Of a DNA stretch of 64,000 nucleotides, positions 33,567 to 48,446 are shown in pieces. This DNA comes from Leidyana gryllorum EB-2025a (lineage: Eukaryota; Protista; Apicomplexa): positions 62,001 to 126,000 of the forward strand of contig JBLWGC010000216.1 of the NCBI GenBank assembly GCA_048772705.1, written 5' to 3'. How positions within the stretch are numbered: the stretch's first letter is position 1; each line of letters begins with the position of its first letter. The notes below the pieces were generated by a model that was given only the letters and a program-made list of their open reading frames with translations, was not told where the DNA came from and made no database searches. Both the position numbers and the translations under genes were made by a program.

Positions 33567-34886
33567 ATGACCACCCTAAATCCTATTGACATAGACAAGC
33601 CGTCGCTGGAATGCGTCGCTCTCATTGACCTCGAGAACATTCGGTTGTCGTGGCAGCGTACCTATTCCCGAGTGTTTGAGTATGCTGATTTGGTGCTCTT
33701 ATGTGGGTTGACAGAAAAGTTGATGGACACTCGCATGAGCCGCATCGTTGTATTCGCTACAGACCCTACAGAGTATAAAGGGCGGCAGGTGCAGATAGTC
33801 GCCAACCGCTTGGGTCTCTTACAGGGCGGAACTAATCGGAACCTCTCGGAACACGAAGTTCGGGTACTTTGTGAGGAGCTCAAGAAGCGGCAAGTGCCTC
33901 TGAGCGACGACGTTGACGCGGGATTCAGAATAATTAAGTCATTGACTGAGGACGCTAAGGCGTCAGGAGCTTTGCAGCCAAAGGGCACGGCGCCTGCCGC
34001 GCTTCACCAGCAGCAGCAACAGCAGCAGTCCCCCATAAAATTAGACGACGACGATGATGATGATGATGACGACGCCATGAGTTGTTTGTCCTCTGTATCC
34101 AAATGTTCCACGCCCACATCGGACGATTCTTCTTCGTCCTCTTCGAGTGACGACTGCGAGATTATAAATGGCGATGATGGCGACGAGGTGGTCTTTTTGG
34201 GCGAGTCTACTACTACTGCTACAGCGGTAGGAGACAGCCGACAAAAGACCCCTGTCCATCAAAATGGAAGCCGAAAACGAGCCCGATTGGCATTGTCAGC
34301 TCAACAGCAGGTTGGGCCATTGCAACTGGGTGGTAAACTTTCTCTTCCACAGGTTGGACCATCAAGGAAATTTGCCAAAACGTCAGCTGGCGGCAGCAGC
34401 AGCGGCGGGTCTACTAGTCTCATGGAACGGCGGCTTTCCGATGAAGGACGACGGATTGAGCTGCGTCTGTATGGTTTCAAGGTAGCCAAAGGCCGCGCTG
34501 TGCAGCGTGGCTGCGACGTGGCATTAAGTGCCGAGTTGACAAAGACGTGTTTCCATCCGAATGTTGACAAGATTGTTCTTTTCAGTGCGGACTCGGACTT
34601 CCAGGAGATTATGCATAACACTATGGAAGCCGAAAACGTGGGCGGGGTCCTCAAGTATGCCAAGACTGCCTGGGTCTGTGGGTTTCGTCAGGCCTTCAAT
34701 CAGGCTAACATACGTGCCCTACGTAGTAATCGCCACAAGATCTTAGGTGGTCATCATGAACGTGGAGTCATAGTTAACGGGAATCTGAAATACGTCGTTA
34801 TCGACGAAGTCTTCCCTCAGATCAAATATGATTTAGAGACCCAAAGAGCCAAGCGGATACACTGGGCACCCCAACCTTTCCCCTAG
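33567..34886 (+). CDS. NYN/LabA (PIN-like) domain putative ribonuclease with low-complexity insert
   Basis: LIDLENI, QRGCDVALSAEL and IVLFSADSDF match the NYN acidic motifs. Intronless. Confidence 0.8.
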   Translation: MTTLNPIDIDKPSLECVALIDLENIRLSWQRTYSRVFEYADLVLLCGLTEKLMDTRMSRIVVFATDPTEYKGRQVQIVANRLGLLQGGTNRNLSEHEVRVLCEELKKRQVPLSDDVDAGFRIIKSLTEDAKASGALQPKGTAPAALHQQQQQQQSPIKLDDDDDDDDDDAMSCLSSVSKCSTPTSDDSSSSSSSDDCEIINGDDGDEVVFLGESTTTATAVGDSRQKTPVHQNGSRKRARLALSAQQQVGPLQLGGKLSLPQVGPSRKFAKTSAGGSSSGGSTSLMERRLSDEGRRIELRLYGFKVAKGRAVQRGCDVALSAELTKTCFHPNVDKIVLFSADSDFQEIMHNTMEAENVGGVLKYAKTAWVCGFRQAFNQANIRALRSNRHKILGGHHERGVIVNGNLKYVVIDEVFPQIKYDLETQRAKRIHWAPQPFP

Positions 34887-42400: not shown

Positions 42401-42708
42401 GACGCGGTCGGTGGACTGCGAGTACTTTCGGCACAAAGTGCTCTTGCTGAACTGTAGTCACCACTACCATACGCTGTGCGCACGTACGGTGCATTTGCGG
42501 AGCAGTCCTGAGGCGTTGGGACACTATCGAGTGTTGCTGGAAGAAGCGGAACTGCAGGTGAGTGGTGGGAGGCACAGGGAAGGGCGTGATCTATTGGCGG
42601 CAGATGGTACATAAGGACGAAGAACGGCTGAGAGAAGTATATGTTGCGATGGAAAGGATTTTGTCAACAGCGTGTTTAGTTTGTGGGCCCCGGATAGCTA
42701 ATGTGTAG
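39426..42708 (+). CDS. Vps18/Pep3-like HOPS/CORVET subunit (divergent), 5 introns
   Basis: Helical body of ~990 aa. C-terminal split RING: CDLCSAPL...LNCSHHYHTLC, a helical insert, then ERILSTACLVCG (compare the Vps18 ECxxCG). Every frame change is explained by a GT-AG intron. Confidence 0.62.
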
Positions 42709-43177
42709 TTGTGAGATTGTGAAACACACGGATCTGAGTTTGTGAGGGACATACCTCATTGGAGGAAAAAAAAACTGTTTTGGTGAATCTCCTTCGAGAG
42801 GGACTATTGTTCTGGTTTTCGGTCATTGCTCACCACTCCCATTGAGACACACGCTCGCTCGCTCGCTCGCTCGCAACTGCCAAGAAATATCACACAGACA
42901 GACCTATATCTGTGTGTGTGTGCGCTGAATAAGTGTGACTTTCGTACTCTGTGGTGGTGTCGTCGTCGATCAACTCGGTTCCTGCCGTGCACAGAGACAC
43001 ACACTCTCTCTCTGTCTCACACACACTGACACACACTCTCTGAGGGTTGGTGTTTCAACAGCGGTGTTGATCTGCATTGTGTCGGTTGAGCGATCTGGCT
43101 GTCATTTACGGAGGCAGTTTTTTGAGGTTCAGAGATTGGAGTCACAATTGTAGAGGGCGCGCATTCGGTGAAGGCGG

Positions 43178-43201
43178 ATGATAAATCACCCACATTCTTG
43201 A
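43178..43201 (+). promoter_or_regulatory. Tiny uORF1 (MINHPHS*) in the AdoMetDC leader
   Basis: ATG ATA AAT CAC CCA CAT TCT TGA. It is the first ATG in the leader and in frame with uORF2. Confidence 0.55.
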
Positions 43202-43225
43202 ACTGAAGACACAAGTATTCTTACT

Positions 43226-43348
43226 ATGACGAATTTCGTCCCCCAGTTCATTCTGACCACTATGCTCTTTATCAGTAACAACGAGAGTGAGGCTGTAACT
43301 GGATCACGTGTGGAGCTGTTCCCTCCTCGCTGCCGCGAACCATCCTAA
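43226..43348 (+). promoter_or_regulatory. uORF2, 40 aa ending Pro-Ser-stop (putative polyamine-responsive uORF)
   Basis: MTNFVPQFILTTMLFISNNESEAVTGSRVELFPPRCREPS*, ending CCA TCC TAA, 388 nt upstream of the AdoMetDC ATG. Confidence 0.7.
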
Positions 43349-43736
43349 TAGCCCCTCACCCCCGACGCCCGAGAAGCTCCCACTACCTGCCACCCTACAA
43401 TTTATCCCCACCACATTCCACTACGTGTACCTGACTCCGCACAATACTACCTGCCATCCCATCCTTGCCTGCCAAGACCGCATTCACACATTCCACACAC
43501 AAGCTACACCATACTTGCACACCTTCTGACCTCTTGCCACGAGACCGAAATCCCCGCCAGAGCAATACTTCCCGTCCTGCAACGACTGTTACTCGATTGA
43601 TATCCAAGTTCACCCCCAAGATCACTGTCACTTACTTCTTATTCCCCCGAGCGTGCCCTTTGTTGCCAACAAGGACCACTACAACCACAACAACTAACAA
43701 GATCACCACTTTTCTCTCTTCCTCTCAGACAAGAAG

Positions 43737-44966
43737 ATGACGACGACGATGAGTCGACGATTCTTTGTTCCCCCGTGCGATCCTCAACTCGCCCCTCCCA
43801 CCGATATTGATGTTCCCTTCGAGGGGGTGGAGAAGAGACTGATTGTGCACCTAAAGCCCGGACTTCCATGGAGACCCTTTGACTTTTCCAAGGCTGAGTG
43901 GCAGTCGATTCTCGACTATGCCCACTGCGATATTGTTTCGGAAAGACATCTCGAAGACACCAGCGTTTATCTTCTTTCAGAATCCACTCTGACGGTATGG
44001 CCCTCAGGCTTCCTGCTCAAGACCTGCGGGCGAACCACCCCCTTCCTGGTATTGGACGTGCTGGCCAAATATGTGTATCCCGAACAACCGCTGGTCGATA
44101 TCGTGGACTGGCTGCTGTATTCAAGGTTGGACTTCTTGCATCCACAGTTCCAGGTGTGGCCGCATCAATCGCACACACAGGAGAAGGAGTATCTGGAAAA
44201 GATTGTACCTGGAGCTCAGCCGTTCCATCTTTCCGCTGGTCAACATGCCCTCGTCGGCTTTGTCTATAGCCCGGCCCCAATCGCTGATAATATAGAGTTG
44301 GAGGAGGCTCTGATGATGCAGATCGATCGTCATTGTGTGAGGGCATTCTCCGGCTTTGACACCCCAGAGGAACAACAGAATCTCGATGATGGAAGCGCTC
44401 ATCACGGCTTCCTGCGTCCCACTCTCGCTGCTGCTTCTTCAAAGGAGTTGGACGAGTTTTGGTTCTCTCCCTTTGGATACAGCTCTAATGCTTTGGCAAC
44501 TGGGCCGTCAAACCCGAGACACGCAGCTTACTTTAGCTGCCACGTGTCTCCCGAACCCGAGACCAGCTACGCTTCATTGGAGGTCGGAGGACGCGGAAAT
44601 AACAGCGACCTCATTCCAATTGCTAAACTGGTCCCCGCCTTTAATGCCAAGTTCGTCCACATCACTAAAGTGTGTGTGCGGTCTCAGAAGGTCTGTGATC
44701 TCGAAACTCAACTCGAGGAGGCCACATCCACGCTGAAGACACCGGGCTATTATCTGCGAGAGTCGTCGTCAGTGACAATCGGTCATTTGGCGATCCATCA
44801 CATATTGATGGAGCGCCCTGGCGCGAATTATCTATCTTTGGCGGATATCCCTGCCCTGAGCTTTGCAAACAAAGCCGGGCACCGTGCCAACAACGATCAG
44901 ATAACTAATGCTCTCACTACCGCCAGTGGAGACGAACTATCCGATAAAGTTAATAGCCAGGACTGA
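43737..44966 (+). CDS. AMD1: S-adenosylmethionine decarboxylase proenzyme (eukaryotic type, stand-alone)
   Basis: FEGVEKRL, YLLSE-STL self-cleavage/pyruvoyl site, LKTCGRTTP, PHQS, GYSSN and HVSPEPETSYASLE. Confidence 0.93.
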   Translation: MTTTMSRRFFVPPCDPQLAPPTDIDVPFEGVEKRLIVHLKPGLPWRPFDFSKAEWQSILDYAHCDIVSERHLEDTSVYLLSESTLTVWPSGFLLKTCGRTTPFLVLDVLAKYVYPEQPLVDIVDWLLYSRLDFLHPQFQVWPHQSHTQEKEYLEKIVPGAQPFHLSAGQHALVGFVYSPAPIADNIELEEALMMQIDRHCVRAFSGFDTPEEQQNLDDGSAHHGFLRPTLAAASSKELDEFWFSPFGYSSNALATGPSNPRHAAYFSCHVSPEPETSYASLEVGGRGNNSDLIPIAKLVPAFNAKFVHITKVCVRSQKVCDLETQLEEATSTLKTPGYYLRESSSVTIGHLAIHHILMERPGANYLSLADIPALSFANKAGHRANNDQITNALTTASGDELSDKVNSQD

Positions 44967-45627: not shown

Positions 45628-45670
45628 CGGCACTTCTTTTTTTTGACACCTCTAACTCCCACTGAGCACC

Positions 45671-48446
45671 ATGGAGTACATGCCTTCCACAGTGTGGGGG
45701 CAAATAGTCCAATTTGTCGATCTCAAGACAGTCCTGACTCTCCGACAGTTGTCTAAACGTTGCTGTAAGATCCTCGACGATCCTGTTTTGGAGTTTTATT
45801 GGGGTGACTTGGTGCGAACACACGACCTCACACGACTCAAGAAAGTTAGTGCTCGCACATCGTGCCGATTTCTCATCCTATTTGGACTCAATTCGGGCCG
45901 ATGGCGTCGAAGGGACTTTGCGTCTTCTGCTTCGTACAGTCTGCCACCCATGCTGCAGGAACAGTGCTCAGTGGCAGTAATAGACGCTCATGACGGAGTC
46001 CATGCTGCGGCTCCTCCTTGGGGACAACTGCGGGTCGCGCGGGAAAGAAACCTCTTTGCCGAAGCTGACGGTCAAATCCACTTTCCTATCTGTCTCGAGG
46101 AGCGACCGAAACGTAATCGACGTCTGCATATCTTCTGGCCTACCGAGCCACATTCCGATGCGACATGGCACGGATACACCACTACGTATCTTTGTGGTAG
46201 CCCCTTAGCGACGTTGCCTCCGGCAGTTAGCGCTCCCTTTGAAAACCCGTACAGCGCCGTCAATCCGGAAGCGGTGTGGGCTGTCTCGGTGGGGCAGCAA
46301 GACACTCAACACTATCGACATATTCTAATACTTAATTGGAGTACCGTCATGATGAACGAACCGGTCTCGGGCGAGTCCGCTCACTGTCGAATATCCGTCC
46401 ACGACATTGTCCGGACCCCAACTCCTGGCGGTTGGGATGGCCAGAAAGCTTTGCCTCGCCCGTTGTGCCTCTTCTGTTTCAGTTTGACGGTATCTGCAGC
46501 AGCGACCAGTCAATTATCTCCGGCTGCTCCGGCAGCCGTCACAGCTTTGGATGCGCTTTGGTGGTCTGACGAAGGTATTTGTATCGTAGCTGTGGGAACG
46601 AGCGAAGGTGATGTGCGACTGAGCTGTGCCAAAGTCGCAGAAGAAGGTACTGAAGTGGTCACCATCACCCACAGTAGATGGTTGGGGAAATCACGGGATC
46701 GTGTCAAAAGAGTCGGCCTCTCTGTCGACGAGGCCGGCTATCTACATGTCTTCGCCGAATGGGAACCGGCACAGTACTGTGCGGTCTATCGAGCCCAAAT
46801 GAGCCCCGATATGGGTACCTCCGAATATCCCTGGAAGACACTCTGCGAGGTCGGATATGACCATCGAGTTTTACCCAACCCGATATTCACATTCTGTCAC
46901 ACTATGAAACAGCTTCTCACCGTCACTGCAACGGGATCTATCGCCCTCATAGATCTCACTCAACAAGTTGAACAGCCAACTCACACTGCAATAGGGCCAT
47001 TGACCTTCACAATAGGCGGCACCCTCGAGGAGGCGCGCTGGAATCTACAACAGAGCCCCCCATGGCTCTCCGAATACAGAGTCAATTGTCGTCCAGCATT
47101 CGTCACAGCCATTCCGTCGCTGGGCCATTGGGCCATAGGTGAGTGATATTTTCCTTTCTCTCCACAACTTTCGAGTTTCCTCAGCTGTCGACAAGAATCT
47201 AAGGATCGTCGCACTCAAAGATGGAATACTCAGATTGGTAACACTGATGACTGGACATTATCACAAGATATATATGGGAAAGTATGACGGGGCCTACAGG
47301 TTCGTCACAATCGATCGAGCAGAAATGCTACTGATCTGGGATCTTCGCCGAAGACAAAAGGTGGCACACATTTCTCTATTGGACCCAACTGGTCAATCGG
47401 ATCTACGCAGAGAGCTCTCAGCCCTAAGTTTGAGCAGCGCGGCCCGGGAGCTATCCGCTACACTCTCCCCATCACACACCAGTGTCAATATCTCCCCTCC
47501 AATGGCTGCCGTACACCCCCCAGCGCCTTCCATTCCCGATCCCAAGATGGAGTTCCCCGACTTGGCTCAGCCATCAGCTTTCCCCCCTCTCCCGGGCGAA
47601 GATGACCCCCTCCGACTATCTTGTGTGCCTTCGCGCCCCTCGCATGGCTGGGGCAAAACTGCACGCGCAGCAATCGATCTCACAGAAGACGCAGGTGGAG
47701 GCGGACGTCTGGTCGAAGATGTGGAAGGCGGCTTGGCGCCCACAGCTGAACCAGATCGACCCAGCAGTGGAGGTCGGCCTATGACCTGCCTGGAGATCGC
47801 TACTGTTGAGTTGGGCAGACGCCTGGGTCTGAGTGGAGACGACCTTGAGAAATATCACGAACTCTTAATCGAAGAGGCCAATCGACGGGAAGTGGAGCGT
47901 TTGGTGGAGGAGGTGGAGGCGGCTGTTGCCGCCGAAGCTGTGGCAACCGCCCCCACTAATCCAACTCCCGGTGCGGAGGAGCGACCCGGTGCACAACGGG
48001 ATACGGGTCCAACAGACATGGCAGAAATACAGTCTCAAGTCACTCGCAGTCTCTCAGAGCGGCCCGGCAGTGGCCGCAGGCCCTCTTTAAAGCCTCTGGT
48101 CACGTTGATAGCTCAGAAGGTCTACGGGCTTCCCTGTCCGCCTCATCTGGTCGTCGAAGCCTTGACCGCCGATGAATCCATGCCGATGAATCGTAGACTA
48201 CAAGCGGCCGAAGCTGACTTTGCTGGGAGCCGATCTGAATGGGTTTCGAGAGGAGAGAGGAAACTAAAGCAGAAGCTCCTAGTGAGAGCCGAGTCCGAGC
48301 GACATGGTGGACAAGCCGAAGATACCCCCATGAATCTCCTGCGCCGGCTGAATGCAGACCGTGCTGTCTCAGCAATCTCCTTTTCGGAGAGGCACTTGGG
48401 AGTCTTCTTCCAAAGCTTGGGCACCTGGGAGGTGTGGCGTATGTAG
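45671..48446 (+). CDS. F-box protein with beta-propeller-like C-terminal region, 1 intron
   Basis: N-terminal MPSTVWGQIVQFVDLKTVLTLRQLSKRCCKILDD..YW fits an F-box. Intron near 47139-47183; WD-like LLIWDL. Confidence 0.72.

Follow-up and report, generated by a model that had tools for sequence, protein, structure and literature searches.

A putative polyamine-linked arrest peptide encoded upstream of the AdoMetDC gene in a gregarine-type apicomplexan

Why should a gene be preceded by a kilobase of almost ATG-free sequence where its neighbours sit a few bases apart or overlap? The question is raised by the gene for the AdoMetDC proenzyme in Leidyana gryllorum, a gregarine-type apicomplexan with a compact genome of 15.5 Mb. 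We analysed a stretch of 64,000 nucleotides (nt) of contig JBLWGC010000216.1, called the window hereafter, to whose positions all unprefixed coordinates refer. A preliminary description of this DNA had pointed to the close packing of its genes, and this is readily seen in the spacing of the open reading frames (ORFs), at 34886/34900, 38289/38313 and 45665/45671, and in the overlap at 47146/47139. Downstream of AdoMetDC, genes lie 5 nt apart (45665-45671) or overlap by 8 nt (47139-47146), and against such extreme crowding a gap of 1 kb is conspicuous. The answer that we favour on balance is that a 40-codon ORF within the gap is a translated upstream ORF (uORF) with a conserved peptide, lying in a long AUG-depleted AdoMetDC leader and acting as an arrest peptide linked to polyamines and eIF5A.

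Since the upstream gene ends at 42708 after a spliced last exon, the non-coding stretch is 42709-43736 (1028 nt). It holds three ATGs (43178, 43226 and 43262), which share frame 2 as counted from the main ATG; the depletion and the single, out-of-frame register noted in the preliminary description are thus confirmed, since base composition would predict 12.8 ATGs and dinucleotide frequencies 14.8. Three or fewer were found in none of 2000 dinucleotide-preserving shuffles of the stretch (Poisson P 2e-4 to 1e-3), and ATG is the most under-represented of its 64 trinucleotides (observed/expected 0.20). CAT, the complement of ATG, occurs 16 times, as often as in the window on average, so that only the sense strand is depleted. 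The distal part of the putative leader, partly simple repeat, has no ATG where 7.5 are expected (0/2000 shuffles). Microsatellite-like runs at 42850-43050, namely (CGCT)5, (TG)6 and (CT)n/(CA)n, contribute to this lack without explaining it. The spacer directly before AdoMetDC is also free of ATG (about 3 expected, P=0.015), which means little by itself because only 12% of its bases are G. Its predicted fold (-44 kcal/mol over 412 nt, z=+1.0) shows no structure beyond that of shuffled sequences.

The three ATGs define two short ORFs (Table 1), the third being an internal in-frame ATG (Met13) of the 40-codon uORF. The latter occurs once in the genome according to a genome search. It ends in FPPRCREPS-stop (CCA TCC TAA) and is directly followed by a TAG; the two adjacent prolines are encoded at 43322-43327, and the terminal Pro-Ser-stop at 43340-43348. 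On recheck, the positions and sequences first given for both uORFs, the CCA TCC TAA ending and the length of the ATG-free spacer all proved correct.

Table 1. Features of the AdoMetDC locus in the window
Feature	Position	Strand	Description
Last exon of upstream gene, with TAG stop (42706-42708)	42604-42708	+	Cys-rich RING-like tail, 35 codons; 5' limit of the intergenic stretch
Distal putative leader	42709-43177	+	469 nt, no ATG; (CGCT)n, (TG)n and (CT/CA)n runs
Tiny uORF (uORF1)	43178-43201	+	7 codons, MINHPHS-stop; weak ATG context (C at -3)
Conserved-peptide uORF (uORF2)	43226-43348	+	40 codons and TAA; strong ATG context (A at -3)
ATG-free spacer	43349-43736	+	388 nt, 12% G, 40% C, weakly structured; opens with a second in-frame stop, TAG, at 43349-43351
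AdoMetDC proenzyme gene	43737-44966	+	409 amino acids (aa), intronless, single copy; self-processing motif LLSES at residues 79-83

The evidence that carries our reading comes from relatives. A word-index protein search found a close AdoMetDC relative, P0001, which is 73% identical to the window's enzyme in the local alignment of that search and 75% identical in a global alignment covering 396 residues. It is encoded on L001, a Logan contig of 4966 nt that is genomic, as it retains an intron of the neighbouring gene. At L001:2493-2615 lies the same 40-codon uORF, ending CCC TCC TAA. Thirty-seven of its 40 residues are identical to those in the window; the last 30 are invariant, and the Pro-Pro pair and the tandem stop are identical. 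The same is true of the Pro-Ser-stop, whose loss in relatives was among the findings that the preliminary description would have taken as a refutation, and this despite an AdoMetDC identity of 75%. The alignable block between the two leaders runs from the ATG of the uORF through TAATAGCCC, the last conserved part of the spacer, and the flanks cannot be aligned. The spacer of L001 is shorter (172 nt) and is ATG-free too. Its distal counterpart (L001:2133-2445, 313 nt) is unalignable, yet it also holds no ATG against 4.7 expected (P=0.0015).

The pattern of substitution within the uORF is that of a coding sequence (CDS). Of the 16 nucleotide differences between the window and L001, 12 are in third positions (P about 8e-4), and the ratio of nonsynonymous to synonymous divergence (dN/dS, Nei-Gojobori) is 0.058, so that the codon-level constraint which the preliminary description proposed to look for in related leaders is present. 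In codons 11-40 all 10 changes are synonymous (P about 6.5e-7). With a dN of 0.039, against 0.189 for the AdoMetDC CDS, the peptide has evolved at about a fifth of the enzyme's rate. A third, closer lineage, whose CDS is about 90% identical to that of the window at the nucleotide level, is represented in two public runs (X1 and X2). Only 3 of the 123 nt of its uORF differ from the window, at 43232 (residue 3), 43250 (residue 9) and 43318 (synonymous), and from the seventh base past the stop onwards substitutions and indels are frequent. Conservation of the peptide thus increases towards its C-terminus. Judging from these comparisons, 43226-43348 is a translated, peptide-constrained uORF under purifying selection. 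That the conservation should instead be owed to an untranslated DNA or RNA element (a promoter, an enhancer or a structured RNA), the ORF being incidental, is scarcely credible: such an element would fit the 89% nucleotide identity of the uORF and its having fewer synonymous changes than the CDS, but neither the excess of third-position differences nor the absence of replacements over 30 codons. Moreover, the other two frames of the uORF hold stop codons, and an Rfam scan of 42500-43900 gave no match.

A translated ORF may also be a gene in its own right, and the strong conservation of the peptide would be expected as well of a free 40-residue micro-protein that happens to be encoded upstream of AdoMetDC in a conserved gene order. 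Synteny is generally conserved, the upstream gene being shared with L001 as well, the N-terminal third of the peptide is moderately hydrophobic (peak Kyte-Doolittle value of 1.67 over 11 residues), and the constrained synonymous sites could be accommodated too. We nevertheless regard a separate gene as improbable. The hydrophobic stretch is too short to span a membrane; the ATG-free stretches on both sides of the uORF, in two species, fit one scanned leader; and the rise of conservation towards the C-terminus, with its PP....PS-stop end, is as in arrest peptides. No homologue turned up among 1.84 billion representative proteins, and a second copy was not found in the genome. The sole match of the exhaustive HMMER search with the peptide (P0016) was spurious, a translated tandem or satellite repeat giving 18 weak stretches. 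The metagenome scans were similarly unproductive: a peptide pattern gave 226 matches and no relative, and the back-translated FPPRCREPS-stop gave two chance-like matches, neither of which is a short ATG-started ORF ending in Pro-Ser-stop.

A further point in favour of a separate gene is that an mRNA shared with AdoMetDC is deduced from the genome. The conserved uORF is on the same strand as AdoMetDC, 388 nt ahead of it in the window and 172 nt ahead of it in L001. The X1/X2 contigs are colinear with the window from about 42800-43050 (X2 reaching about 42800) through both uORFs into the CDS, with nothing deleted. They end about 96 nt past the stop of the CDS and the neighbouring genes are almost uncovered, which gives them the look of transcripts. 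The leader has no GTRNGT splice donor outside a (TG)n run. As the uORF is translated, as AUG is depleted strand-specifically on both sides of it in two species and as plausible splice donors are lacking, we infer that uORF2 and the AdoMetDC CDS would share one mRNA whose transcription starts upstream of both.

Several observations weigh against our reading. None of the public runs on record as RNA holds the locus. One low-depth X1/X2 contig stops just past the GTGAGT of a neighbouring intron and continues into unlike sequence; an intron start means that these runs hold unspliced or genomic sequence, and it is a guess that they are RNA. An ACTAAC, a pyrimidine tract and a CAG, the last of them seven nt before the main ATG, lie at 43693-43731 and resemble a splice acceptor. 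The uORF is absent upstream of the AdoMetDC genes of four more distant gregarine-type loci (L002, L003, L004 from Gregarina niphandrodes, and L008), whose enzymes are 41-46% identical to that of the window, and it is thus not a general requirement in gregarines. Finally, synonymous sites are themselves more conserved between the window and L001 in the uORF (pS 0.44) than in the CDS, where they are saturated (0.84; P about 8e-7), so that a model based purely on the peptide is insufficient. This suggests an added limit on codon choice or speed, or else an RNA element.

Two candidates that might have changed the picture around the main ATG and in the more distant relatives deserve mention. A reading of the CAG before the main ATG as an acceptor for cis- or trans-splicing is unsupported, with no GTRNGT donor outside (TG)n and with an X1/X2 contig that shows replaced sequence and no deletion; a TCAGAC 7-9 nt from the main ATG is common to the window and L001 (L001:2773-2778). 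In L003, a contig from SRR5171258, a short uORF encoding MSQKSPPF-stop (L003:3034-3060), with a Pro-Pro and a penultimate proline, lies about 230 nt before the AdoMetDC ATG. The leader of L003 is not ATG-depleted, and this peptide is unrelated to uORF2; it could be an independent case or chance.

What might a translated, conserved uORF do in front of AdoMetDC? By analogy with the plant and yeast systems, we think that it is probably a cis-acting feedback brake on AdoMetDC translation. Scanning ribosomes would mostly skip the tiny uORF, with its weak start context, and begin translation at the 40-codon uORF, whose context is strong. At the stop codon of the latter, the exit tunnel would be occupied by the invariant 30 C-terminal residues, Pro-Ser sitting at the peptidyl-transferase centre and the Pro-Pro pair seven to eight residues before it. 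The invariant block is, we infer, about as long as the ribosomal exit tunnel, and 30 invariant residues would imply contacts along the whole of it. Release at Pro-Ser-stop would require eIF5A, with which high polyamines would interfere; the stalled ribosome would then block those that follow and prevent reinitiation, and AdoMetDC synthesis would drop. When polyamines are low, termination would be quick, and ribosomes would scan on across the spacer, which lacks both structure and ATGs, until they met the main ATG. A ribosome that had translated the tiny uORF would finish too near the inhibitory uORF (24 or 11 nt) to reinitiate there, and would thus bypass it. That ribosomes stall at the stop codon, that polyamines are the effector and that the tiny uORF plays the part given to it here should all be taken as presumptive.

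Those systems make the analogy attractive. AdoMetDC uORFs are said "always" to have a penultimate proline, except in vertebrates and the sea squirt (Ivanov, Atkins & Michael 2010; PMC2811004), and the AdoMetDC uORF peptides of plants and mammals cause polyamine-responsive ribosomal arrest (PMC5587730). In the uORF of yeast HOL1, MLLLPS-stop, high polyamines impair release at Pro-Ser-stop and ribosomes queue (Vindu et al. 2021, as related in PMC11550727). The gregarine uORF has the penultimate proline of the AdoMetDC class and a peptide conserved in three lineages. It also has the conserved Pro-Ser before the stop that characterises a sensor of the HOL1 type. Genes for an eIF5A that carries the STSKTGKHGHAK hypusine loop, for deoxyhypusine synthase and for spermidine synthase are all present in the genome, and hypusination is predicted from them. 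A conserved-peptide uORF that regulates AdoMetDC with no sensing of polyamines or eIF5A, as a constitutive brake, as a trigger of mRNA decay or in response to another signal (S-adenosylmethionine, methionine or the stage of the life cycle), nonetheless has a small but appreciable chance of being the truth. Selection and leader architecture show dependence on the peptide and say nothing on the effector, and many conserved-peptide uORFs produce no arrest under standard conditions (PMC5587730). Against this stands the conjunction of AdoMetDC downstream and Pro-Ser-stop at the end, two features that recur in polyamine-responsive uORFs (PMC2811004, PMC11550727).

A close parallel to our preferred arrest-peptide reading is the pair of uORFs of plant SAMDC/AdoMetDC, a tiny uORF and a small uORF of 48-55 codons (homology group 3 of conserved-peptide uORFs; Hanfrey et al. 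2005, as cited in PMC2811004). In both cases the enzyme is the same, a long conserved uORF ends in Pro-Ser-stop, a short uORF with a weaker ATG precedes it, and the leader is otherwise ATG-free. The peptides differ. Plant peptides end in ...YSNC(S/A)(K/R)(R/K)PS (PMC7106846 supplement), against ...LFPPRCREPS here, and the Pro-Pro pair is absent from them; the spacer here is 172-388 nt. Compared by eye with the homology group 3 peptide (...EAPLGYSIEDVRP.GGIKKF....YSNC..(R/K)PS), the gregarine peptide shares the Pro-Ser-stop with a nearby Cys and basic residue only. By this comparison it does not belong to that group, and the profile-free search of 1.84 billion proteins returned no relative. The assertion in the preliminary description that the peptide is unlike that of plants outside the C-terminus thus holds, by eye, against the plant sequences of that supplement.

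The proposed likeness to a plant tiny and small uORF pair stands only in part. Outside the conserved uORF each leader has a single ATG, 48 nt ahead of the start of that uORF in the window and 47 nt ahead of it in L001, and the start contexts are common to both species, with C at -3 for the short upstream uORF and A at -3 for the conserved uORF and the main ATG. The short uORFs themselves encode unrelated peptides of 7 and 11 codons, in different frames, so that what is shared is the position of the ATG and its weak context, but not peptide, length or frame. In land plants the tiny uORF overlaps the start of the small uORF by one nucleotide, whereas here its stop precedes the next ATG, by 24 nt in the window and by 11 nt in L001. 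In function the weak-context gregarine uORF could resemble its plant counterpart, letting some ribosomes bypass the inhibitory uORF, although without overlapping it. An in-frame UGA link between the two uORFs of the window was considered and rejected for want of conservation, since the two uORFs of L001 lie in different frames and indels of +1 and -3 fall between those of the X1/X2 relative. We put forward only tentatively, as rather less than an even prospect, that the gregarine lineage independently evolved a plant-like sensor of polyamines made of two uORFs, a weak short one followed by a long Pro-Ser-stop arrest peptide, upstream of the same enzyme and with an unrelated peptide.

Other known systems share single traits with this locus. 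Yeast HOL1 has the Pro-Ser-stop end, a role in polyamine homeostasis and the proposed logic of impaired release; it is a transporter gene with a uORF of 6 codons, compared with 40 codons and 30 invariant residues here. Mammalian AMD1 encodes the same enzyme and stalls ribosomes in a polyamine-dependent manner at the termination of a peptide-specific uORF (MAGDIS-stop; PMC2811004), but this is a cap-proximal hexapeptide without a penultimate proline. The upstream conserved coding region (uCC) of AZIN1 and ODC homologues has two adjacent prolines near its C-terminus and, in several animal phyla, a Pro-Ser end (PMC2811004). It is regulated through eIF5A and polyamines (PMC11550727); it has a non-AUG start and belongs to ODC-family genes, as against an AUG in good context before AdoMetDC. 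Within the Apicomplexa, the arginine-responsive uORF of Toxoplasma TgApiAT1 is the only peptide-conserved regulatory uORF covered by a 2021 review (PMC8383288). It too has a conserved peptide and serves metabolite feedback, but its metabolite, gene and peptide are others, and no link to Pro-Ser-stop is described for it.

The identity of the downstream gene is well supported. The AdoMetDC ORF is the only match to Pfam PF01536 in the genome (E=1e-42), and as the match spans profile positions 4-328 of 343, the N-terminus is complete. The LLSES processing motif and the other AdoMetDC motifs are unchanged in 16 gregarine-type homologues. A profile search for AdoMetDC returned no chromerid, diatom or red-algal loci. 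A profile made from the gregarine enzymes did retrieve three joined AdoMetDC-ODC proteins of about 800 aa (P0019, P0020 and P0022; PF01536+PF02784+PF00278), named from ferns (Adiantum, Ceratopteris) and found on contigs of chromosome size. The same fusion of two enzymes is known from Plasmodium. On the 5' side, the upstream Cys-rich gene has an intron of 46 nt (GTGAGT...CAG, 42558-42603, phase 0); its final-exon peptide is kept in L001 (L001:2024-2131), as is the intron. A view based on the longest ORF misses both this intron and the 35-codon last exon.

How new is all this? The preliminary description, which knew of no such case in apicomplexans, had overrated the novelty, since AdoMetDC uORFs with a penultimate proline were already known in animals, fungi, plants, algae and diatoms. 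No polyamine-linked uORF from Apicomplexa came up in our literature searches, and an AdoMetDC uORF with a conserved peptide is apparently unreported there. The regulation of polyamine synthesis in these parasites is poorly understood, and the locus illustrates that an AUG-free gap of 1 kb can mark translational control in a genome whose genes are otherwise separated by a few bases or overlap. If our reading is true, the "penultimate proline" rule of AdoMetDC uORFs would be extended to a further eukaryotic supergroup, and there would be a natural arrest peptide of unrelated sequence, with 30 invariant residues, a Pro-Pro pair and a Pro-Ser-stop, in which to study the interplay of nascent chain, eIF5A and polyamines at termination. 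If, in addition, the sensor evolved independently, the added constraint seen at synonymous sites would suggest a second component, at the level of the RNA or of codon speed. Sensing by Pro-Ser-stop and eIF5A would then have arisen by convergence, and it would be the first known case in Apicomplexa of metabolite feedback on polyamine synthesis.

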